This document shows, piece by piece, positions 12,730 through 56,895 of a DNA stretch of 64,000 nucleotides. Where the stretch lies: NCBI GenBank assembly GCA_048013815.1, contig CM106586.1:11532001-11596000 (forward strand), written 5' to 3'. Position numbers and translations under genes: made by a program. Position 1 is the first letter of the stretch; each line of letters begins with the position of its first letter. The stretch is from Setoptus koraiensis (taxonomy: Eukaryota > Animalia > Arthropoda). Under the pieces are notes generated by a model. The model worked only from the letters and a program-made list of their open reading frames with translations, searched no databases and was not told the origin of the DNA.

Positions 12730-13335
12730 TTAACTACCGCGGTAATATATCGGTTTGTATTTGCATTGGAGGTCGGAATCAATGTCGTTGAATTGATCAA
12801 CCATTTCAAAGCTCTTTGGCTCCGACTCAGTAAACACCTCGTTTTTGAGCAATTCTCTCGGAAGTATTGTCAAGTGAGCACCTCGACAGTATTGGACAGT
12901 TTTGAGCCAGCGTCTGACTACCTGGCTACTCTTCAATTTGTTGTCTGTAACATGGTAATTGTCTCCGGCCGTGAAACCACGGCTAGCCAGCAACTCCATA
13001 GGAAAGATTGAGCTTTGAGCGTAACTTTCAATCAACTTGCAAGATCGCTTTAGACTCAGAAAAATTTCAATCTCTTCTTCGGTATCCAGAGGAATGGGGC
13101 TGCTCCAGCAGTCACCCTCCAACTTAGTTGTTGGAATGAGGTTCTCTGGTAGATCAACTTTCGATGGGTCGAAACATCGATTGACCGTTAAACGAACACT
13201 TTGATCGTTTTCCACGACGTCCAAGCTTTGTATAACAGCTTCGTCTGATTGTTCTGCTTGCTCTAGTTTTGTTTCTAGGTTTCTTTTGCAGATTAAAATA
13301 ACCTGGCCGAGTATCTTTGAAATCAGTCCGTGCAA
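12730..13335 (-). CDS. Unknown protein or decayed gene; 201-aa open segment without a clear ATG
   Basis: Protein-like composition (coiled-coil segment, PIPLDTEEEIEIF). An in-frame TAG or acceptor lies just upstream, and stop-interrupted protein-like frames continue down to about 12170. Confidence 0.4.
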   Translation of the reverse strand: MHGLISKILGQVILICKRNLETKLEQAEQSDEAVIQSLDVVENDQSVRLTVNRCFDPSKVDLPENLIPTTKLEGDCWSSPIPLDTEEEIEIFLSLKRSCKLIESYAQSSIFPMELLASRGFTAGDNYHVTDNKLKSSQVVRRWLKTVQYCRGAHLTILPRELLKNEVFTESEPKSFEMVDQFNDIDSDLQCKYKPIYYRGS

Positions 13336-13501
13336 TTCATGGTCCTTCTTTGTTCTGTCAGAAATGGGCTACAGTTCCAAGCCAAGTTTGTAACAGCATC
13401 TCAGATTGATATTTGTTTGAGACATGCCAGCTCTTTTAGACGATACCCAATGACTGTGTACATGATTGATTTTCAGCGCTTAATTTTAATTATTAGCGCT
13501 T

Positions 13502-13505
<4 letters not shown>

Positions 13506-13576
<71 letters not shown>

Positions 13577-13626
13577 AGCGCAAATAAACTGAATCAAATA
13601 CAACTTTCAGACTCGTTTACTATTTG

Positions 13627-13667
<41 letters not shown>

Positions 13668-13672
13668 TCTCT
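13506..13672. repeat. Two (CT)n microsatellites (13506-13575 and 13627-13672)
   Basis: Long CT runs. The counterparts in copy 2 (about 18309-18334 and 18387-18399) are much shorter. Confidence 0.9.
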
Positions 13673-13811
13673 GTCCCTGTTGCTCAGCATAGTATTTAAT
13701 TACCACCAGCAGTCAGTGGTGATTGCAAAAATTTATTCAGCGAATCACTGTTGTGTGGCACTCGGAGATTGGCTAGATCACAATAGTTCATAGTTTTTGA
13801 AAAACGGCGCA

Positions 13812-14723
13812 ATGCTCTTGAAGTCGTTGTTACCGATCGCTGTGGTGGGTTTTCTGGCGACTGACTATGTCTACGTGTACGCCAATTTCCACGAACCGGG
13901 AGAAATATCCGGCCATCGTAACGGATATTCACGAGGAGGCAGAAAACGGCCAAATGGGCAACCAAGACAACAAATTGAATGCGGTGTAAATAAATTTGGT
14001 AGAACCAGAATAACGAATGGCCAACCAGCAGAGCCCGACTTCTATCCGTGGATGGCACGCCTTCCCGATCCCGGTTGTGGAGGATCCATTGTGAATGAAT
14101 ATTTTATTCTGACAGCGGCACATTGTGTTACTGGGGATAGGCCCAAAAGAGTGATTGTTGGTGACAATGATCAGTCACAAGTCGACCCAACTGAAAGAAG
14201 TTACGAGATAGATTGGACAATCCCGCATCCTTCTTACTCGAAACATGAAAATGATATTGCCCTGGTGAAATTAACTGAACCAATCGAATGGAGCGATTCG
14301 ATCCGGCCAATCTGTTTGCCGACAAGAGACACGAATCTTGAGCCAGGAGCAAATCTGACAATCATAGGTTTTGGCGAATTACGGTCTCCGGACAAGCCTA
14401 CGTATCCAGATGTGCTGCAAGTTGCCCACGTTCCTCTTGTTTCCGAAGAAGAATGCGCCCATGCTTGGAATTATGAAGGCGAGGTAAGGTACTTTGCAGA
14501 AGAAATGATCTGCCTCGGCGAACATGATGAAAATGGCATGCTGAAGTCTTCCGCCTGCTATGGCGACTCAGGTGGACCGGCCATGATACCGCTAAATAAT
14601 CGCTGGGCACAAATTGGCATAGCTAGTTTTACACGAAAAGGATGTAAACTAAAATACTCCGTTTACACAAGATTGACCCATTATCTCGATTGGATTGAAA
14701 GTATCATTAATGCGCATGGGTAA
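13812..14723 (+). CDS. Secreted S1A serine protease, intronless (copy A)
   Basis: ATG 13812 with signal peptide; activation site GRTR/ITNG; catalytic triad TAAHC, NDIAL, GDSGGP; PICLP. Confidence 0.93.
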   Translation: MLLKSLLPIAVVGFLATDYVYVYANFHEPGEISGHRNGYSRGGRKRPNGQPRQQIECGVNKFGRTRITNGQPAEPDFYPWMARLPDPGCGGSIVNEYFILTAAHCVTGDRPKRVIVGDNDQSQVDPTERSYEIDWTIPHPSYSKHENDIALVKLTEPIEWSDSIRPICLPTRDTNLEPGANLTIIGFGELRSPDKPTYPDVLQVAHVPLVSEEECAHAWNYEGEVRYFAEEMICLGEHDENGMLKSSACYGDSGGPAMIPLNNRWAQIGIASFTRKGCKLKYSVYTRLTHYLDWIESIINAHG

Positions 14724-15070
14724 GAAGCGGGGCAAAAGTAGGAGGAGACAACCAAGTAGATGAAAACGACAAAATACAGGAAGTCAGCCGGGTGCGGAGC
14801 TGACATGAAGAATAAATTCTAGTCGACAGCGATAACGGAACGTGCGTGTTACTTTGTCCGTGTTGAGATTGCGTGTTTTCTTCGTTCTTGTGTGTATTGG
14901 GGTTCTTCTTTTGTTTCTGGAGTTTAACTGTGCGAGTTCATCAGGAAATCAAGCCTGAACAATATTCGAAATATTATTACCTGAGCATATTTGGGATGTT
15001 TTCAATGCCAAACGATCAAATGTCGACTGTGAATTTTGCATGTTCGAGGTGAGAGCGACGTTTGTCTTGC

Positions 15071-15131
15071 GTAACAAAAAGGAGGTTTGGAGCAAGACTT
15101 GGTTGACTTGCTCCAAACCTTCTTATGTTAT
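15071..15131 (+). other. ~60-nt hairpin (duplicate at 19819-19879)
   Basis: aggtttggagcaag (15083-15096) pairs perfectly with cttgctccaaacct (15107-15120). The stem extends through a G-U pair and a bulge to about 24 bp. Confidence 0.7.
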
Positions 15132-15471
15132 AGCAGTGCTGATTATGACGAGTCCACAAGGCTTATTTCAGATGTTTTAGCGATGAGTGCCCTGGTTAGA
15201 TTTTGGTGAAACTCCAGTGGTTCGCAAGTGCGGAAAAGTCCGGTTCCGGTTTTACAAAAAGCTGCCGTCGATGAGGCTCGAGCAACAAAAATCAAGCAAC
15301 TCAAAGAATTACACTTCTTGGAGATGATGTTGCTCCACAAAGAGTTTATTGTGTTGATTGTAAGAATGTTGATTGAAATATGCTACATAGATTAAATTTA
15401 TTTCTATCTTTTTATTGTGACACATTGCGATCAGAATGTCCGACGCAGTCGAGTTAATGATGACGGCGACC

Positions 15472-15799
15472 TCAGCCGGAGATGGTTTTTGTAATCCAAT
15501 CTCGGTAATATATCAAGTCACTGGATACTGTGGCCCATGCTTTTCTTTTGATATTGACACACTTCTTTGGACCGAACGACACCGTTCCGAATAGATACCA
15601 GCGATCATCTTTGGGATCTAAACAAGCCATAGGTCCCCCTGAGTCGCCCTGGATTTCGGTGCAGCAGTCGAAGTTTAAATTGATAACAATTTGTTCTTAA
15701 AATACAGTATGTAGTTCTCAAATGAAATTCCTTGTAAAACGTAAACAAAAATCTCAAACCTACCATACATACTGCTCCCATGACCCTTGTACCTGGTCC
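15472..15799 (-). pseudogene. Orphan 3' exons of the minus-strand protease carried in duplication copy 1
   Basis: Last exon 15472-15648 (GDSGGPMACL...WITKTISG*) and the last 36 nt of the preceding exon (15764-15799), offset exactly 4748 bp from the intact gene. Everything upstream is absent. Confidence 0.88.
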
Positions 15800-16007
15800 G
15801 GACTTCTATCCCGGTTGTGGAGGATCCATTTTGAATGAATATTTATTCTGACAGCGGCACATTGTATTGACAGAAACACCGACCGAGTAATTCTTGGTGG
15901 CCATAGTCAAGACAAATTCGACCCAACTGAAAGAATTTACCCAGTAAAGGAGATATTCGTGCATCCTCCTTATGAAGGGAATACGAATAAGAATGATATT
16001 GCCCTGG
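15798..16007 (+). pseudogene. Fragment of a third intronless protease variant
   Basis: PDFY..CGGSILNEY..TAAHCIDRNTDRVILG..NDIAL. Carries a 24-nt deletion between ATCC repeats and a 1-nt frameshift (gaatatttattc versus gaatattttattc). Confidence 0.88.
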
Positions 16008-17334
16008 GAAGTCTACACTGGTAGACTGTTTAGTTGGCAAGAAACGACGCGGATTGAGCGGCAAGACCGAGGTTATTTTTCACGATGGCGTCAAGCGCGA
16101 TCTCAAGATAGTGATAATACCCCAAGTGGATCATTTAATGAACACGCTCACTGTCACAGAGTCGTTGATGTTTGCGTCAAAATTAAAAAATTCCCACAAG
16201 CACGATTTTGATCATTTCAAAAATGTTCAACGCGTTATAGAGCAACTAAATCTGACTGTTTGCTCCAAGCAATATTGCAGCAAATTAAGCGGTGGCCAGT
16301 ATAAAAGAGTAAGCATCGGACAGGAGCTTCTATCAAATCCTGACATTATGATTTTAGATGAGCCCACTTCCGGTTTGGACGCCGTCACCTGTTATAATAC
16401 TGTCATGGCGTTGAGAGATTTGATTAAATCTAATCCACAACCGATGGAAAATTTGGGATACATGTTCTTTCAGATTTATGTTATAGTATTCGCGGCCGTT
16501 TGTGTAACATCGCTCACGTTTCCATTGGCCGTTCATGTGCTATTGAAAGAATACAGAAATGGCTGGTACAATTTGTCGTCGTATTTCGTTGGTCGAACAT
16601 TGGCCGATTTGCCAATGCCAACATTCAATGTTGTGCTAGCGATGGCAATATCATATCATTTAACCGGCCAGGCTGAATCTTATTACAATTGGCGATTCTT
16701 TTCCGTTGCAATTCTAGTGGTGCTGGCCACACTGATCGCCCAGACTCAGGGCCTCATGTTTGGAGCCTACCTAATGAATGCAGTTCAATCGGCAGTGTTT
16801 GTGGCACCGGCCTCAACTGCACCTCTGGTTGTTGTGAGCGGATTCTTGCTGCGAACCAATAGTTTGCCCTTCATATTGCAAGTGTTTGGCAAATTGTCTT
16901 ATTTCACTTATGTGCTCAATGGGTTCATTGTGAGCCGTTACGGATTTGGCAGATGCCAGTGCGAGGATGAGATGTTTGGGGTGCAACAGGATCACGTATT
17001 GCCGCAAAATTCCAAGGCCATCATCAGTATCTGGTTGGACACATTCAAACAGGACTATGCGCAACAACAAAATAACTCCACGGCGCTTGTCGCGCCAACG
17101 AATGAAACCGATTCCATGGATCTGGTGGACAAATTGAGCAGATCACTGGAACAGGCGAGAAATTTCGGATTTAACATAACTTCTTGCGATCAATTGAAAC
17201 CCTTCCCAATGTTGGATTACGAGCTCAACGACTCAGATTTGACGCTATGCTTCGTTGCGTTAATCGTTATGCTACTAGTTTTCAGGGTGCTCGCTTTTAT
17301 GTCGCTGTCGTGGATGATACGTATTTCGGTGTAG
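16006..17334 (+). pseudogene. ABCG half-transporter fragment, 5'-truncated with a large in-frame internal deletion
   Basis: Begins at GKST (end of Walker A), then LSGGQ and ILDEPTSGLD. It jumps from SNPQPM directly to ENLGYMFF, so the H-loop (IHQP) and first TM helix are absent relative to the ABCG at 54646-56895. AATAAA at 17392. Confidence 0.85.
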
Positions 17335-17427
17335 TAGCGTCGCTTGTTATTATACAACATTGTTACAATCACATGCTAGTTTCTTCATTGAAATAAATTG
17401 CACAATTGCCACAAATCGAAGAGCTTC

Positions 17428-17841
17428 TCATTGATCTATTCGCCTAACGCTGCGGGGCACGTAGGCCAAAGTGAGGGATTTACAAATGCTGAACTTTCCT
17501 CTTATCGGGTGCATTTCGCCCAAAATTGAGCAGAGAAGCGAACTTTTATTGCTTGCGATCTGCCTGACAATGGCGACAAAAGATCCCTCGGGTATGCGAA
17601 AGTTGATATCTTTCAATATTGGCTGCAGGCCTATTTCTTTGTCCACTACGCGATCCGTCCAAGAAGTGCTGGCATTCTCTATTTGGATTGCATAATTACT
17701 TTCTTCGCGGCTGACATACGTCACCAATTCTTTGTTGTTGAGAAACTTGCTCAGGCGATTAACCGATACTGATGCCGTAATGAGATTGGTTATTGTCTCG
17801 GGCAAGTTCGTCAGTGGCAGCCTCAGCAAATTAAACAACAA
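17428..17841 (-). pseudogene. ABCC/MRP-family fragment (end of TMD1 to start of NBD1)
   Basis: LFNLLRLPL..SVSVNRLSKFL..ILKDINFRIPEGSFVAIV..KSSLLCSILGEM..AYVP is MRP-like. Walker A is degraded to RQIASNKS. No flanking ABCC sequence. Confidence 0.85.
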
Positions 17842-17859
17842 TATTGAGACTTGGTGTCC

Positions 17860-18080
17860 CCTTAGTCAGTGGACTAAGGCGGGGAGATCGTAGGTCGGGG
17901 AGGTTCTATCGATTTTCTACTCCCCTGTTCTCCCTCACTCTCCCAAATCTCCAGAAAACTAAAGAAAAAGAAAAATTTCAGCTGACGAGAAAAAAAGTGT
18001 GACCAATATCGTGACAAATATCGTGACATTTCTCGTTATTAAAGTTTAAAAGATCTACGATCGTAACCTCCCTACGATCT
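17860..18080. mobile_element. Short non-autonomous element with sub-terminal inverted repeats and terminal stem-loop (Helentron/DINE-like or MITE)
   Basis: Hairpin ccttagtc-agtg-gactaagg (17860-17879); agatcgtagg..gaggtt (17885-17905) inverted relative to aacctccctacgatct (18065-18080); 12-bp tandem repeat gtgacc/aaatatc (about 17999-18027); palindrome tacgatcgta (18056-18065). Confidence 0.45.
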
Positions 18081-18160
18081 AACAAAGGCCTTCTCAGAGG
18101 TTAGCACATGGCCAGACTCACCACCACTGAACACATCTAATGCAAACGAGCCAATCGCGA

Positions 18161-20547
18161 TCAGAAATGGGCTACAGTTCCAAGCCAAGTTTGTAACAGC
18201 ATCTCAGATTGATATTTGTTTGAGACATGCCAGCTCTTTTAGACGATACCCAATGACTGTGTACATGATTGATTTTCAGCGCTTAATTTTAATTATTAGC
18301 ACTTAAAATCTCTCTCTCTCTCTCTCTCTCTCTCGAGCGCAAATAAACTGAATCAAATACAACTTTCAGACTCGTTTACTATTTGCTCTCTCTCTCTCTG
18401 TCCCTGTTGCTCAGCATAGTATTTAATTACCACCAACAGTCAGTGGTGATTGCAAAAATTTATTCTGCGAATCACTGTTGTGTGGCACTCGAAGACTGGC
18501 TAGATCACAATAGTTCATAGTTTTTGAAAAACGTCGCAATGCTCTTGAAGTCGTTGTTACCGCTCGCTGTGGTGGGTTTTCTGGCGACTGACTATGTCTA
18601 CGTGTACGCCAATTTCCACGAACCGGGAGAAATATCCGGCCATCGTAACGGATATTCACGAGGAGGCAGAAAACGGCCCAATGGGCAACCAAGACAACAA
18701 ATTGAATGCGGTGTAAATAAATTTGGTAGAACCAGAATAACGAATGGCCAACCAGCAGAGCCGGACTTCTATCCGTGGATGGCACGCCTTCCCGACTGTG
18801 GAGGATCCATTTTGAATGAATATTTTATTCTGACAGCGGCACATTGTATTGATGAAGAGACCGACCGAGTAATTCTTGGTGACCATAGTCGAGACAAATA
18901 CGACCCAACTGAAAGAATTTACGAGGTAGAGGAGAAATTCGTGCATCCTCTTTATCATGACCTTCCTACTAGAAATGATATTGCCCTGGTGAAATTAACC
19001 AAACCAATTGAATGGACTGATTCGATCAGGCCAATCTGTTTGCCGACTAGAGACATCAATCTTGAGCCAGGAGCAAATCTGACTATCATAGGTTTTGGCG
19101 CAATAGAAACCACTGGCACCTCTTCGGACATGGATACGCTTCCAGATGTGCTGCAAGTTGCCGATGTTCCTCTTGTTTCCGTAGAAGAATGCGCCCATGC
19201 TTGGAATCCCTTTCCTGAAAGTGACATTTTACAAAGGTACTTTGCAGAAGAAATGATCTGCCTCGGCGAACATGATGAAAATGGCATGATGAAGTCTTCC
19301 GCTTGCTATGGCGACTCAGGTGGACCGGCCATGATACCGCTAAATCATCGCTGGGCACAAATTGGCATAGCTAGTTTTACAGGAATAGGATGTAAACTAA
19401 AATACACCGTTTACACAAGATTGACCCATTATCTCGATTGGATTGAAAGTATCATTAATTCGCATGGGTAAGAAGCGAGGCACAAGTAAGAGGAGACAAC
19501 CAAGTAGATGAAACCGACAAAGTACAGGAAGTCAGCCGGATGCGGAGCGGACATGAAGAATAAATTCTAGTCGACAGCGATAACGGGACGTGCGTGTTAC
19601 TTTGTCCGTGTTGAGATTGCGTGTTTTCTTCGTTCTTGTGTGTATTGGGGTTCTTCTTTTGTTTCTGGAGTTTAACTGTGCGAGTTCATCAGGAAATCAA
19701 GCCTGAACAATATTCGAAATATTATTACCTGAACATATTTGGGATGTTTTCAATGCCAAACGATCAAATGTCGACTGTGAATTTTGCATGTTCGAGGTGA
19801 GAGCGACGTTTGTCTTGCGTAACAAAAAGGAGGTTTGGAGCAAGACTTGGTTGACTTGCTCCAAACCTTCTTATGTTATAGCAGTGCTGATTATGACGAG
19901 TCCACGAGGCTTATTTCAGATGTTTTAGCGATGAGTGCTCTGGTTAGATTTTGGTGAAACTCCAGTGGTTCGCAAGTGCGGAAAAGTCCGGTTCCGGTTT
20001 TACAAAAAGCTGCCGTCGATGAGGCTCGAGCAACAAAAATCAAGCAACTCAAAGAATTACACTTCTTGGAGCTGATGTTGCTCCACAAAGAGTTTATTGT
20101 GTTGATTGTAAGAATGTTGATTGAAATATGCTACATAGATTAAAATTATTTCTATCTTTTTATTGTGACACATTGCGATCAGAATGTCCGACGCAGTCGA
20201 GTTAATGATGACGGCGACCTCAGCCGGAGATGGTTTTTGTGATCCAATCTCGGTAATATATCAAGTCACTGGATACTGTGGCCCATGCTTTTCTTTTGAT
20301 ATTGACACACTTCTTTGGACCGAACGACACCGTTCCGAATAGATACCAGCGATCATCTTTGGGATCTAAACAAGCCATAGGTCCCCCTGAGTCGCCCTGG
20401 ATTTCGGTGCAGCAGTAGAAGTTTAAATTGATAACAATTTGTTCTCAAAATACAGTATGTAGTTCTCAAATGAAATTCCTTGTAAAACGTAAACAAAAAT
20501 CTCAAACCTACCATACATACTGCTCCCATGACCCTTGTACCTGGTCC
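18161..20547 (+). repeat. Direct segmental duplication, copy 2 (~2.39 kb)
   Basis: Collinear with 13358-15799. Its right end continues into the intact minus-strand protease gene. Confidence 0.95.
18539..19471 (+). CDS. Secreted S1A serine protease, intronless (copy B)
   Basis: Same signal peptide and propeptide as copy A; triad TAAHC, NDIAL, GDSGGP. Confidence 0.93.
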   Translation: MLLKSLLPLAVVGFLATDYVYVYANFHEPGEISGHRNGYSRGGRKRPNGQPRQQIECGVNKFGRTRITNGQPAEPDFYPWMARLPDCGGSILNEYFILTAAHCIDEETDRVILGDHSRDKYDPTERIYEVEEKFVHPLYHDLPTRNDIALVKLTKPIEWTDSIRPICLPTRDINLEPGANLTIIGFGAIETTGTSSDMDTLPDVLQVADVPLVSVEECAHAWNPFPESDILQRYFAEEMICLGEHDENGMMKSSACYGDSGGPAMIPLNHRWAQIGIASFTGIGCKLKYTVYTRLTHYLDWIESIINSHG

Positions 20548-22445
20548 ACTATAAGGTGTTATGCAAATGTTTCCATGGTCATTCAAACGAACGCTTGCGT
20601 CTTCACCTTTGTTGCAAACATCTGGCTCGGAGACAACTACTCTCAGTTCTTTTAATTGTTTCGAAGTTTTATCATGCTCGGCTGGAATGATTGAAGAATT
20701 TTAAATTGTCTGTAGTTATTAGAGACTCGAAAAGATCATTCAAAATTGTCATCATTTTTATCTATATTCAACTCATTTATAATTTGCTTATGATGATACT
20801 TACTTCTGCCTGGAATTTTATTTTTCATTGATCATATCGAAATTGAATTGGTTTGAAAGATTACATATTCGACATCGAGTACAAAAAAAAAAATAGTATT
20901 TGTTGATTTTGTACGTGCAATCTATTGATTGATACCAATAGTGGTGAAACTATGACTTACCCCAACCGGTTTGGTAGCAAACTTTGTCTTTTGTATGGGA
21001 GTAAGCATCAATATCAGCGTTCGGCAAACATATTGGGTGAATTTCATCAGTGAATGGTACCTTCCGGTCGAGCTTGATTAATGCTAAATCATCACTCAAT
21101 TGTTCGTATGAAAACTTAGGATGCACAACATATTTGGTTGCGTTGTAAACTTTGTCGGGTCCATATTTTTTTGTGAAATCCAGAACACCCAAATAGGAGA
21201 TCACGCCACGCCTGAATGGTCAGACATATCGCACAATTACTATCATTGAGCTCTATAAATGAGATCTCCTATATGTTATGGATGGAGAAAGCTAGTAAAA
21301 CTCACTTGTGAGGCTTCGCCTGAAAGCAATGAGCAGCGGTTATTACCCAGCGGTCATTGAGTAGTGCCCCATTACATAGGAGACTTGAACCTGTTTCTGT
21401 CCTGATTGAAATCTTAGTCTAACATATTACAGGGCGAATAAAAAAGGGACGAAGTTTCCTTTGAGCATATGATCTTTCCAATTTCTTGTTCGTTTTGTGC
21501 CAATGTAACAAGGCGAGGTCAATTTGCCCAAATGTAAGTTATTATATAGAACATTTTTGATCATTCATAGCCTACTAGTGCATCAGAATTTCAACTTGTT
21601 ATTTGATCACACATCGAACGACCGAAATAGGCCAACCATCAGAGAGGTTCGAGATTCGAATTATCATAAAAAGAATTTTCACACCCTACGGAACGCATAC
21701 AATGTAGAAATTTTATGACGCGCAAATTTTTCTGTGCATTTGTATCGCCGTTTCCTAGCTGTTTTACGTGAAGCATGCATGCAAATGAAGTTTCGCAAAT
21801 GATCAAGAATGTCCACTATAATATTTACATCTGGTTAGTTATTTACTCACTGCCCAGGGCCAATAACTAAATAATTAAAGAGAAAATAATAATAGAGAAG
21901 AAAAAATGAAAGACGAGATATTTTAATGACACCAAGTTGTTTGATCAGCATCTTTTTATCCACAGTGGGTCCGTATCGTTTGCTCGAAAGTCTGTTGCTC
22001 GACATGGCAGTGTTTAATTATGGTGATCCATCTATTGAGCGTCACAGTTAGATATTACTTACTGTTTAGAATATAAGCCGAAGACTATTCTAGAATGTTT
22101 GTCTTGAGGATTAGATATCTTCCTGATCCCACAATGTTTATCATTGCTATACATTGAGTTCTTTGGTTTTCCATCGGATTCCACTGTAACATTTTCTTTG
22201 AAGATATTATCTAAATCCCCCAGACTAATTGGTGATCTACTGATATCTTTAAAGATCTTATTTTCCACCTTAGCAATCAAATCGGCCTTGTCTTGGGCCT
22301 CTGTTCTGACAGTAAAGAGGTGAAGCAGTAAGAGGAGCGATCCCAGCAAACATGTCCGAAGATGTGCCCAATTGTGTATCAATTTAATTTTTCCGAAATG
22401 ACGCATTTTCACAATTGTTCTGGCAAGAAAACACGCCTCGGACAT
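20220..22445 (-). CDS. Secreted S1A serine protease, 7 exons: 22445(or 22406)-22063, 21866-21851, 21418-21306, 21211-20961, 20809-20804, 20681-20512, 20396-20220
   Basis: The spliced product reads HSR/IVFG..HYWPWATKI..LCNGALLNDRWVITAAHC..DDLALIKL..PICLP..TGWGRTEH..GAVCMGDSGGP..WITKTISG*. All junctions are GT-AG and in phase. Confidence 0.9.
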
Positions 22446-23828
22446 GATATCCAACTGTCTGCGTATTCTATTGGAGTAATTGATGTATTCAAAATGAAAA
22501 CCATTAATCGATCTGTTGATCCTCGAGTGCCCTTATTTCATAGTAATAGAGCGAGGATTGAAATACAGATAAATATCAGACAGCAACTGAGTGCTGTCTT
22601 TATTAGAACTGCCGAATTAATAGCTCTAACGATCAAAAGTTTATTAATCAAAAACCATGTCATATGATATGCGTCTATGGTAGAAAACGATTTGCAGCGC
22701 ACTTGATTCATTTTTCTACAGACATGGTGGCCATTCGATTCATGAACGGTTGCTTCTGACTAGGGAATGAATTAAAAAAATCGTCCGCGAACTTCAGAAA
22801 TACTCACAATCTATGATCAGGATAACCTTTCGGGAAATCATTGTAGTAGAGACTGCCATTTTTTTGCTGACTGGGATGATTTCTTTTTCTCAACTGAAAC
22901 CGTGGCTTTTACAATTTTCTTGCCTTCGATTCACGACAATGGATAATTTCAATCATTTTAATCGTGATATTATGTGAAAATTCTTAGTAATTGTCCGTAA
23001 AGGCTTTTGTTCATTCGAATGAGAGAAAGATGGCATCGATTGTGACGGTTTGACTGAAACTGCGTGTAGGCACGCTCAATCGGGATAAAACTCTCGCTTC
23101 CAACATTCAACTACCTTCGAAGTCGTATGTATGAATATTTCGATTTTTTATCTGGATCATGGTTTGATTGAATAAGAATTGACTAGACCAATGATTTTTA
23201 TTGGTACAGTCTATTGAAACAGACCAATGAGCGGCAAGTTGAAATATGAAGTGTCCGAACAAAGTCAAGAAAAAATCAAAGTTCAGAATGCAATTGGTTC
23301 TACTAGAGGGTGGTCGAATGGAAAAACAAAAAACTCTAGCGGACTTCATAGGTCTTCTTCGTGTGTCGTGTTAACGAGTATTCCTGCATTTGTAATTGAA
23401 TTGAAACCCAATTTGCCGCCTAATCAATAGGTATCTCCCGTCGGGGTCTATGAAAATTTTGAGCATTGACGTCAGACTAAACTTAGCACATCTCTCTCCA
23501 TGTCTCAAATCCTTAAAAAAAATATCTCTACTATCAATAGTGCACGAAACAACACAATTAAATCTGCTGATATGCTAATGAGCATATTGTAAGTATTTTC
23601 ATTTTCAAACGATCTAGTTCAAACGATTGATATTTAATCCGATGAATCGTTCTCTATAACATACAGTGTCATACATTGAATATGTTCAATTGTCTTATTT
23701 GGTCCTGCTTGTCCAGAATCAGTTCTAATTCCATGGTGGGATTTACGATCATATCAAGCAGAATCTCCCCTAGCTTGTGACTTAAGCAGTACAAAATCTA
23801 ACTGTTGAATGCTGGAGCAATGGTTGCA

Positions 23829-54645: not shown

Positions 54646-56895
54646 CTATCTGGCCACTTTGTACATAACCAACAACAATACAAAAAACCTGAGTGCCACT
54701 AACGCTGCAAACATCACCACCATACCTATATACAGATCGTTGTCTTCAATATCTAAATCGTGCATAACTAGCGAGGGGAAATTCTGGTCGCATTTAAACT
54801 GGCCAATGTAGATCTCTCTATCTGGCGATCCGTGGTCCGTTTCCAAACCAACATTCGCACCTATGCTGGCCGATGGCGACGACGATGACGCTGGCATATC
54901 ATTATTGATAAAGTTGCCCATTTCTGTCGACTGTGCTATACCCTGACCATATGCCAAACTACGCGCGATTTGATCGCTATCCGTATAATCGATATTTTCT
55001 TGGTCGGAAAGTTGATAATTGTTCGGATTGCACTTGCATCGGCCGAAACCGAATATGCTACCATAGATTGTCTTAACTGCATAGTGAAAATAGTTACTCC
55101 GACAAATGAGTTTCAGCCACTTGCCCAGACGCGACAGTCTCTTTGTGAAGCCACTGTAAACGAACAGAGGCACCAACGACAGTGGCCCGACAAAAACCGA
55201 CGCTGACAAGTTGTTCATAAATACGGCGCCAACAATGAGGCCTTGCGTTTGGGCCAATAAACTGAGCGTTATGAGAGAATATGTATAAACTATAAAGCGC
55301 CACTCATAAGTAGAACGGGGCTGGTGCGACAAGTAAAATGTGAGGCCAGAAAAAATCAGAACACAAAATATTTGAAATGGGGCGTCTGAGGTTATCTTGC
55401 CACTAATATAAGTGGGCACCGTGTACCAGCCATTGAAGTACTCCTTGGCCAATACTTTTACGTCCGAAGGAAAAGTCAAAACTGTTATCATGTGCGCAGC
55501 AAACATAACGAACAGGGCCCCGTATATGATGAACAGTAAGTTGTCTTGTATACGTTGCATATCTTGCATTTCCTCTCTTGTTAGACTGGCCGCAGTGGCC
55601 ACACTGATAGAGGTGAGACTTTGTTTGTTGAATGTTGGACATCCGTCGCTACGTCCAGTGTGTTCGCCAAAGATATACACGTAAAAGAATGCCATGACAA
55701 TGTGCAAGGCCAGCCTAAGTCCGAACAAAATGGGATCGCGTAATAGTTGCAACGTTGACCGTTGCACATGAATCCATAGATGATCTAAGGTGGGACAAGG
55801 ATCGTACAATATGGCTTTTTTCAATGTTTGCGCATTGATGGATTCCAATTTATTGTCAAAAATCATCTTCTTCTGGCGCTCCATTCTAATTAATTTCTCT
55901 GCCTTATTTCGCCCATAATCTCCCGACACAACCTCAATAAAATGATCCATCGGATTGTAGAATGGTGGGCACGGGGCGCCCACGCTGGCCAATGTGCCCA
56001 GTATGTCGCCCGGAGCTCCGTTGAAGGCACATCTACCACCAGAGGCCATCATGTAGACTCTGTCGAATAATTCAATCACTTTGGCGCTAGGTTGATGTAT
56101 CGTGGTGACAATAGTCAACGGTTGTGCAGAACTGGCGTTTGAATTTATAATGTGGCGCAACACTTGTATTGTCTGATAACATGAAGAACTATCTAAACCG
56201 GAAGTGGGCTCGTCCAACATCAGTATGTTGGGCCGTTTCACTAGCTCCTGGCCAATGGCAACTCGTTTTTGTTGGCCACCCGAGCAGCGAGTTATCACAT
56301 TGTTTTGACATACTTGCAGGCCCAACTGTTGAATAACGCGTCTGACTATGGCTCTATGTGAAATGTCATAGGTACGATTCTTGTAACGCGACGCATAATA
56401 TATTGTTTCGGTGACGGTGAATTGCGGCAAAAAATCATCGTGCTGGGGCACAATAGCAATGCGTACCTTTGGCTTGCCTACAACAAACATTTCGCCCATC
56501 GACAAGCCAGCGTTTCGTTTCATACACAAACACTCCAACAGGGTAGATTTTCCAGCGCCCGACGGACCCATCAGAGCCACCAATTCACCTGACAGGAAGT
56601 ATCCACTCAACTGGCTTAATATTCTGCGAGGACTCTTTTTGAACGGACCAAAATTAAATCTGGGCACTGCTTCCCAACACAGATTGGTCCATTTCACATA
56701 GAAGCTACCCTCATTTGAGGCGTCCATATCTATACTCAAAGTGCCATCGCTGTTAACTATAACTCTCGGCGGCCGGGCACAACTAATTTGACTGAAGTCT
56801 CCGAGGCTCTTCTGGCGATGCGCCGTTTCGCTCACGTCCAGTGAACTTGACGATGTGGACAAACATGTCCGTAGATTTGCGCCGCTCGGATCCAT
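54646..56895 (-). CDS. ABCG half-transporter, intronless, 749 aa
   Basis: NBD-TMD order: GPSGAGKST, CSGGQ, MLDEPTSGLD, TIHQPS, then six TM helices with a Cys-containing extracellular loop. Confidence 0.95.
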   Translation of the reverse strand: MDPSGANLRTCLSTSSSSLDVSETAHRQKSLGDFSQISCARPPRVIVNSDGTLSIDMDASNEGSFYVKWTNLCWEAVPRFNFGPFKKSPRRILSQLSGYFLSGELVALMGPSGAGKSTLLECLCMKRNAGLSMGEMFVVGKPKVRIAIVPQHDDFLPQFTVTETIYYASRYKNRTYDISHRAIVRRVIQQLGLQVCQNNVITRCSGGQQKRVAIGQELVKRPNILMLDEPTSGLDSSSCYQTIQVLRHIINSNASSAQPLTIVTTIHQPSAKVIELFDRVYMMASGGRCAFNGAPGDILGTLASVGAPCPPFYNPMDHFIEVVSGDYGRNKAEKLIRMERQKKMIFDNKLESINAQTLKKAILYDPCPTLDHLWIHVQRSTLQLLRDPILFGLRLALHIVMAFFYVYIFGEHTGRSDGCPTFNKQSLTSISVATAASLTREEMQDMQRIQDNLLFIIYGALFVMFAAHMITVLTFPSDVKVLAKEYFNGWYTVPTYISGKITSDAPFQIFCVLIFSGLTFYLSHQPRSTYEWRFIVYTYSLITLSLLAQTQGLIVGAVFMNNLSASVFVGPLSLVPLFVYSGFTKRLSRLGKWLKLICRSNYFHYAVKTIYGSIFGFGRCKCNPNNYQLSDQENIDYTDSDQIARSLAYGQGIAQSTEMGNFINNDMPASSSSPSASIGANVGLETDHGSPDREIYIGQFKCDQNFPSLVMHDLDIEDNDLYIGMVVMFAALVALRFFVLLLVMYKVAR

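Follow-up and report, generated by a model that had tools for sequence, protein, structure and literature searches.

How did a 2.4-kb unit of DNA come to lie twice, in the same orientation, on either side of pieces of quite different genes? The question is raised by positions 13358-20547 of a 64,000-nt stretch of the Setoptus koraiensis assembly GCA_048013815.1 (contig CM106586.1, positions 11,532,001 to 11,596,000), which is hereafter called the window and whose positions are used throughout. An earlier note, made from the letters of this stretch, had described a direct 2.4-kb duplication around ~2.36 kb of filler. Comparison of the window with itself by BLAST, followed by global alignment of the two copies, recovered exactly this arrangement: a single gapped self-match pairs 13358-15799 with 18161-20547 at 91.3% identity over 2,474 columns (E = 0), and the filler that separates the copies, 15800-18160, is 2,361 nt long. 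What is actually duplicated is an intact plus-strand gene of the trypsin family, and the sequence indicates that the duplication yielded a second, apparently functional protease gene. The explanation that we favor, and to which we give about an even chance of being right, is a tandem segmental duplication of the 2.4-kb unit with a templated insertion at its junction, originating in replication or repair. The locus is an ordinary kind of complex gene duplication and not a gene-capturing transposon.

For comparison we used Logan contigs of four sequencing runs from four studies (X1, X2, X5 and X7), none of which is shown to be the source of the assembly. Where the contigs match the window they agree with it at 99.5-100%, so that the runs derive from the same organism or a very close one; of the words sampled from the stretch, the best runs contain 0.71. 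Contig depth is a mean over the whole contig and was given no use as copy number, and the only value relied upon is the exact zero coverage of 15800-16008 in X2.

The duplicated unit and its protease genes

Copy 1 (13358-15799, plus strand) is contiguous with the left flank and copy 2 (18161-20547, plus strand) with the right flank, as the earlier note had stated. The limits of homology are exact at 13358 and 15799, and similarity stops abruptly at 13358 and at 15799/20547. The 40 nt to the left of 13358 are unrelated to those left of 18161, and the 40 nt to the right of 15799 are unrelated to those right of 20547. The breakpoints of the copy-number gain are without extended homology, with 0-2 nt at most. 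There is no N gap in the window.

The unit consists of a complete protease gene without introns, the 440 nt upstream of it, in which the (TC)n tracts lie, and a further 1.07 kb downstream, where the last exon of a second, convergent protease gene is found. The first description of the unit recognized the minus-strand gene and overlooked the complete plus-strand trypsin-family open reading frame (ORF) in each copy. In copy 1 this is protease A (13797-14723, plus strand; 308 aa), which matches Pfam Trypsin at 1e-52 over profile positions 1-220 of 220 and bears TAAHC, NDIALVK and GDSGGP motifs as well as a signal-like N-terminus. Its counterpart in copy 2, protease B (18524-19471, plus strand; 315 aa; Pfam Trypsin 6.5e-48), is likewise intact and intronless and is 80% identical to A, with the differences concentrated in codons 90-250. 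Both proteins span the whole Pfam profile and bear the His, Asp and Ser motifs, and each gene is preceded by the same 440-nt length of upstream sequence. At ...SSACYGDSGGP (14640-14675 in A; 19388-19423 in B) both proteases carry Ser, not Asp, six residues before the catalytic Ser, and in our reading their pocket would be chymotrypsin/elastase-like rather than trypsin-like.

The convergent gene is a multi-exon member of the trypsin family on the minus strand (20220-22532), whose last exon, from GDSGGP through ISG to the stop (~20395-20220), lies within copy 2. The exons in the right flank are at ~20590-20700, at 20953-21219 (Pfam Trypsin 5e-11), at 21305-21418 with WVITAAHC, and at ~22062-22400 for the N-terminal part. 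The right boundary of the unit, 20547, falls in the last intron of this gene. Copy 1 has only its cut-off 3′ end, as had been noticed before: an orphan duplicate of the last exon, from GDSGGP to the stop (15472-15647, minus strand).

Identity between the copies is a mosaic. It is 98-100% over the first ~700 nt and the last ~1.2 kb and 72-88% in 14090-14560, the core of protease A, which corresponds to 18811-19307 in copy 2. Across the 3′ part of the unit (14810-15799, 990 nt) the copies show 9 differences, and the 1.07-kb non-coding 3′ flank equals the coding ends in similarity. The central coding part carries six indels between the copies, each a multiple of three; beyond these, only two (TC)n tracts vary in length, copy 2 being shorter there by 44 and 32 nt. 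These tracts are the (TC)35 and (CT)23 microsatellites at 13506-13672, in the upstream region common to both copies, with their counterpart in copy 2 at 18309-18334. All runs contain many further paralogues of mosaic structure, visible as joints at which A-like and B-like segments are mixed, which points to a protease family evolving by patchwork conversion. Core variants in the run contigs were considered as sequence of copy 2 or of the protease piece in the filler; the variant letters agree with neither and therefore stem from still other paralogues.

Two repeats lie in or beside the unit. A short high-copy repeat is present in both copies (15050-15260 and 19798-20008), where contig depth, as a whole-contig mean, is ~24,000 compared with ~120 nearby. 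It has loose ends at 15216 and 15260 and contains a 46-nt near-palindrome at 15079-15124, and its Rfam matches to microRNA families derived from miniature inverted-repeat transposable elements (MITEs) are weak and insignificant. To the left of the unit, a minus-strand ORF of 201 codons (12730-13335; no Pfam family) has a 5′ end, 13250-13320, that is multi-copy in all runs, with 7-16 contigs and with joints recorded there as 'goes back 41-63'. Some repeat therefore ends within ~40 nt of the left boundary of the duplication.

Contents of the filler

The filler was said to contain a protease fragment, an ABCG fragment, an inverted ABCC fragment and an inverted-repeat or hairpin element. BLAST, Pfam and PDB matches, among them one to ABCC3, identify the first three, and the fourth is present too, as a multi-copy repeat. 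The first piece (15800-16008, plus strand; 209 nt) covers codons ~80-158 of a third protease paralogue and shares 86% identity with copy 2 and 75% with copy 1. It is a mosaic variant, copy-1-like at TCCCGGTTGTGG and copy-2-like thereafter, and it lacks 24 nt that copy 1 has flanked by ATCC. Loss of one T from a T-run has shifted its frame, a start codon is absent, and the reading frame does not continue into the ABCG sequence downstream. The shuffling inferred earlier has yielded no in-frame chimera.

The second piece derives from an ABCG half-transporter gene (16009-17334, plus strand; Pfam ABC_tran 1.5e-12 and ABC2_membrane 8e-23). Its reading frame stays open for 441 codons, beginning at the Walker-A lysine (G|KSTL) and reaching the native stop, and the piece aligns to residues 115-255 and 449-740 of the full-length ABCG of the window. 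It lacks the N-terminus and ~190 internal codons, an in-frame loss at 16447|16448 that takes the H-loop, the end of the nucleotide-binding domain (NBD), the linker and the first transmembrane helices. In X1 the left contig ends at 16447 and the right contig begins at 16445, which a 3-nt overlap (CCG) at this internal deletion would tentatively fit. Contigs of X1 and X2 physically end at 16445-16452. In X7, a contig is identical to the window over 16303-16447 and departs from it in the next 14 nt, so that a form of this ABCG with the missing middle part exists. Run X7 covers only exon-like parts (15501-15647, 16303-16447 and 16894-17182), and one of its contigs stops at the exon boundary 15647; it is probably RNA, which would imply that the proteases and the undeleted ABCG are expressed. 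The piece is followed by an ABCG 3′ untranslated region (UTR; 17335-17427, plus strand) with AATAAA at 17392-17397.

The full-length ABCG half-transporter gene of the window (54646-56895, minus strand) is one uninterrupted exon of 749 codons and lies 35 kb away. It was considered as the donor of the filler piece and ruled out, the identity being 29-41%. The closest named relatives of the piece are proteins of acariform mites, at 25-42% identity. A protein word search with the ABCG ORF, which covered proteins of up to 745 aa and so stopped just short of the 749-aa paralogue, returned nothing above 44% identity, and an exact look-up of five proteins of the window in protein collections gave no match.

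On the minus strand beyond the UTR lies a decayed ABCC piece in two parts. The 3′ part (17428-17847) holds the end of the first transmembrane domain and the start of NBD1, with similarity from 17847 to ~17450. The 5′ part (18082-18160), which translates as AIGSFALDVFSGGESGHVLTSEKAF, ends at the junction with copy 2. The piece matches ABCC3 residues 574-697 (E 2e-20); its Walker-A motif has lost all three glycines (RQIASNKS), and AYVP is followed by a stop. The two parts are separated by a 233-nt multi-copy repeat (17849-18081) inserted within the ABCC coding sequence. Its contigs have 20-60 times the depth of their neighbors, taken as whole-contig means, and at 17849 and 18082 there are loose ends that belong to other copies. 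The empty site is carried by contigs of X1 and X5, as a joint 17847->18082 that reads AFVSILLFN, a canonical ABCC motif. This is the element that had been taken for an inverted-repeat hairpin, and its inverted repeats are only 10-11 nt long (fold z -2.6). ARAGORN found no tRNA in it, no Rfam family matched it, and the window holds no further copy. It is best called a short multi-copy interspersed repeat rather than a classical MITE or a tRNA-derived short interspersed nuclear element. The ABCC region itself (17450-17849 and 18082-18160) is represented by five or more distinct contigs in one low-depth run, which fits a large ABCC family with homogenized NBD-proximal parts, or many ABCC relics.

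A single donor locus probably supplied the ABCG and ABCC pieces together, as one block. The join between the ABCG 3′UTR and the ABCC piece is bridged by contigs of X2 (16452-17488; 2 mismatches) and X5 (16757-17488; 1 mismatch), runs that have no sequence on 15850-16008 (X2 on all of 15800-16008); this, and the decay of the ABCC piece beside a pristine ABCG, argue for a single block. An X2 contig of 1,928 nt covers 16009-16447 with 2 mismatches and is preceded, with no fork at 16009, by 1,489 nt absent from the window; it is presumably the donor ABCG gene with its 5′ part. Overall, contigs of other samples match the ABCG piece at 99.5-99.8% identity. The earlier reading probably supposed too many template switches, because the ABCG-ABCC join exists in runs without the 16008|16009 join, and the joins specific to the event probably reduce to about three: 15799|15800, 16008|16009 and 18160|18161. 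To call the fragments foreign is likewise a misnomer, as the pieces derive from gene families of the genome itself.

A mosaic of gene fragments side by side could suggest capture by a transposon, either a Helitron, as proposed before, or a Pack-type element with terminal inverted repeats (TIRs), and the minus strand of the filler does start with TC after an A. The fragments, however, abut with no element backbone between them, and the one repeat present, at 17849-18081, is small and interrupts the ABCC piece. Nor does the cassette recur as a whole: X2 is without 15800-16008 and has the ABCG sequence in another context, and the window contains no second copy. The ends of the filler, GG...GCGA on the plus strand and ...GTCC|G at the end of the minus strand, show neither TC...CTRR nor an A|T site, and no GC-rich hairpin before CTRR-T occurs on either strand of 15700-18300. 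No TIR of at least 8 nt was found between the ends of the filler, of the filler with copy 2, or of copy 1 with the filler, and there is no target-site duplication, the flanking 12-mers being unrelated. We regard capture by a transposon as extremely improbable.

An RNA-mediated origin, in which complementary DNA pieces of protease, ABCG and ABCC messages were joined by template switching of a reverse transcriptase or captured at a double-strand break, is very improbable in our judgment. The ABCG piece is intronless and reaches its native stop and a 3′UTR with AATAAA at 17392, as such an origin would have it. The absence of introns is uninformative, however, since the full ABCG paralogue of the window is itself a single exon and the proteases are intronless, and we dropped it as evidence for this origin. 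No poly(A) run follows the AATAAA at 17392-17397, and a target-site duplication is lacking. The ABCC piece, a decayed relic with an internal repeat, is unlikely to have been an mRNA, and the ABCG-ABCC join exists as DNA contigs in other samples.

Origin and age of the duplication

Under the favored explanation, a broken or stalled 3′ end at 15799 would have been extended on two ectopic templates, the first being 209 nt of the third protease paralogue and the second a block of ~2.15 kb from an ABCG locus, including the 3′UTR, the downstream inverted ABCC relic and the repeat. Synthesis would then have moved back by ~2.4 kb and restarted at 13358 on either the sister chromatid or the homologue. 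The mechanism is most likely a single homology-independent event of template switching, of the type known as microhomology-mediated break-induced replication (MMBIR) or fork stalling and template switching (FoSTeS), and end-joining with captured fragments would lead to the same product. The protease cores may have been shaped, then or already, by exchange with other paralogues. As a matter of speculation, forks may have stalled at the (TC)35/(CT)23 tracts, 150-300 nt inside the left end of the unit, or at the palindromic high-copy repeat that lies 650 nt from the right end. We infer that there was a single event, that the templates were switched in this order and that the rearrangement is polymorphic, and we propose that the ABC pieces and the orphan last exon were left as dead by-products. 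The earlier description of a complex rearrangement is supported, and the rearrangement is non-homologous: the unit is duplicated in tandem, and sequence from other loci lies at the junction.

Several observations weigh against a recent, templated duplication of this kind. The first concerns the junctions, at which serial microhomology had been reported. At 15799|15800 the unit ends in ...TGGTCC and the piece starts with GGACTTC; copy 2 has GAGCC before GGACTTC, so that the two nucleotides CC at 15798-99 are shared, which holds against a copy-2-type donor (GAGCC|GGACTTC). Of the joins 15799|15800, 16008|16009 and 18160|18161, only the first can be scored for microhomology. The CC is the sole demonstrable microhomology at a junction of the event, and it is unremarkable by chance, as P(m) = (m+1)(1/4)^m(3/4)^2 predicts 2 nt or more in ~16% of random joins. 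The ATCC repeats do bracket a 24-nt deletion when the protease piece is compared with copy 1, but the site is internal to the piece and not a junction of the event, and the deletion may predate the event and may perhaps have been present already in the donor. Microhomology of CTGG at 16004-07 could not be shown, the near-identical X2 contig aligning only from 16009. What makes template switching plausible is the topology of the locus and not microhomology.

A second difficulty is the divergence of the protease cores. Between A and B, codons 1-90 and 250-318 have a synonymous divergence (dS) of 0.02-0.03, compared with a dS of 0.22 (dN 0.215, omega ~1) in codons 90-250, about ten times the divergence of the flanks (NG86 estimates). 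The core therefore has a distinct, older history and does not owe its divergence to selection alone, and it would need extra conversion events, or a switch between homologues, beyond a simple recent duplication.

The remaining difficulties come from the other samples. The joins 15799|15800 and 16008|16009 are not shown in the contigs of three of them. Depth is zero on 15800-16008 in X2, where the bins 15650-15849 and 15850-16049 are fully explained by two contigs (111.8×150/200 = 83.9 and 135.2×41/200 = 27.7), and X5 has nothing on at least 15850-16008. A 2,445-nt contig of X2 follows 14810-15799 with 3 mismatches to copy 1 and then runs for 1,455 nt into sequence that is not the filler, without a fork; a 587-nt contig of X1 covers 15403-15799 and continues with 190 nt of non-filler sequence, again with no fork at 15799. 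The natural reading of the X1 and X2 sequence past 15799 is the unit joined to the right flank, a haplotype without the join 15799|15800. Finally, the present sequence does not separate a single event from a stepwise history.

In a stepwise history, the locus would descend from an older array of at least three protease genes, of which the middle copy was mostly deleted, with the ABCG/ABCC block inserted or left there separately. Ongoing gene conversion between the outer copies would keep the flanks 99% identical and selection would keep the cores different. The core dS of 0.22 suggests an old split, the filler protease piece is a third and mosaic variant, the runs hold many mosaic paralogues, and a full ABCG gene lies in the same window. 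Yet the protease piece starts at about codon 80 directly at the end of the unit, which would take at least three precisely placed deletions, and the ABCG piece is young by its 441 open codons and its 99.5-99.8% identity to contigs elsewhere. The non-coding 3′ flank of 1.07 kb is as similar between the copies as the coding ends, and in other samples a single unit appears to lead directly into non-filler sequence. We consider a stepwise origin possible though unlikely.

Because three other samples do not show the two left joins of the filler, either the rearrangement is young and polymorphic, or, with lower probability, the assembly is in error. An artefact would mean that two haplotypes or paralogues of one protease locus were stitched in tandem through chimeric reads with unrelated fragments. 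The single unforked path past 15799 in X1 and X2 speaks for this together with the missing joins, the ~1% divergence of the flanks and the microsatellite length differences resemble allelic differences, and the best runs hold only 0.71 of the sampled words. Against it stand the lack of an N gap, the intactness of both ORFs, with cores that differ by 20% and only in-frame indels, and the need for a four-segment chimera whose outer ends fall exactly on the end and the start of the unit. The ABCG-to-ABCC join and the boundaries of the repeat are confirmed in independent runs, and no run has been shown to be the source of the assembly, so that absence from the runs is not absence from the assembled animal. 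Misassembly is, on balance, distinctly unlikely.

Returning to a templated tandem duplication, we ask how old it is. The duplication looks young because the flanks of the unit are ~99% identical and the ABCG piece is open for 441 codons and 99.5-99.8% identical to other contigs, and to this extent the earlier label 'recent' is apt; it does not extend to the cores, with their dS of 0.22. The simplest account is a young duplication, with ~0.3-0.6% change per copy if the 2,445-nt X2 contig stands for the ancestral unit, whose cores later exchanged sequence with other paralogues or whose two units stem from different haplotypes; alternatively, the duplication is old and its flanks were homogenized. 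A more specific version, which we think quite unlikely, is that the locus is a very young germ-line product of MMBIR that still segregates and is absent from the three other samples, the final switch having been made onto the homologous chromosome. Two strongly different versions of a digestive protease would thereby have been fixed next to each other, as a 'heterogeneous duplication'. If this version were true, the locus would be a natural and datable snapshot of a template-switch duplication creating enzyme diversity in an arthropod, and the donor ABCG locus would still be identifiable.

Significance and comparison with known systems

If real, the rearrangement is a clean case in which a homology-independent duplication added a second, functionally different digestive protease gene, and it would indicate that such events scatter dead pieces of detoxification (ABC) genes. 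Annotation pipelines may miscall these pieces as genes, as the ABCG piece forms an ORF of 426 codons. The practical value lies in caution for annotation and for assembly checks and, if the rearrangement is polymorphic, in a possible population marker.

In Tetranychus urticae, fragments and pseudogenes of ABC genes are common and mostly not expressed, the ABCC and ABCG families have undergone lineage-specific expansions, and one group of ABCG genes has a maximum of one intron per gene (PMC3724490). The locus resembles these families in its ABCC and ABCG fragments and its intron-poor ABCG, and differs in that the fragments sit at the duplication junction of an unrelated gene family. With gene capture by Helitrons and Pack-type elements it shares the mosaic of several host gene fragments; unlike such captures, it lacks all structural hallmarks that were tested, and the cassette is not repeated as a unit. 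Heterogeneous tandem duplications, in which two different alleles of one gene stand side by side, occur at insecticide-target genes in mosquitoes. The present locus is similar in carrying two different, apparently functional versions of one enzyme gene in tandem with near-identical flanks, whereas the cores of A and B may come from conversion by paralogues instead of from two alleles.

The closest parallels are the human constitutional rearrangements attributed to FoSTeS/MMBIR in a study that cites the model of Hastings et al. 2009 (PMC5120786). Their signature is templated insertions of hundreds to thousands of bp from other loci at duplication junctions, where 0-3 nt of microhomology and blunt joins are both common (PMC5120786). 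Like these non-recurrent complex duplications, the rearrangement described here combines a copy-number gain and breakpoints without homology with insertions of 0.2-2 kb from other loci at the junction, one of them inverted, and would share with them 0-2 nt of microhomology at the junction. Unlike the human cases, it was not seen to arise de novo and is a germ-line variant, fixed or segregating, of an arthropod-like genome; only three event-specific junctions seem to be present, and the gene cores of its units differ strongly. We conclude that the locus adds another example to a kind of rearrangement already known and brings no new mechanism.

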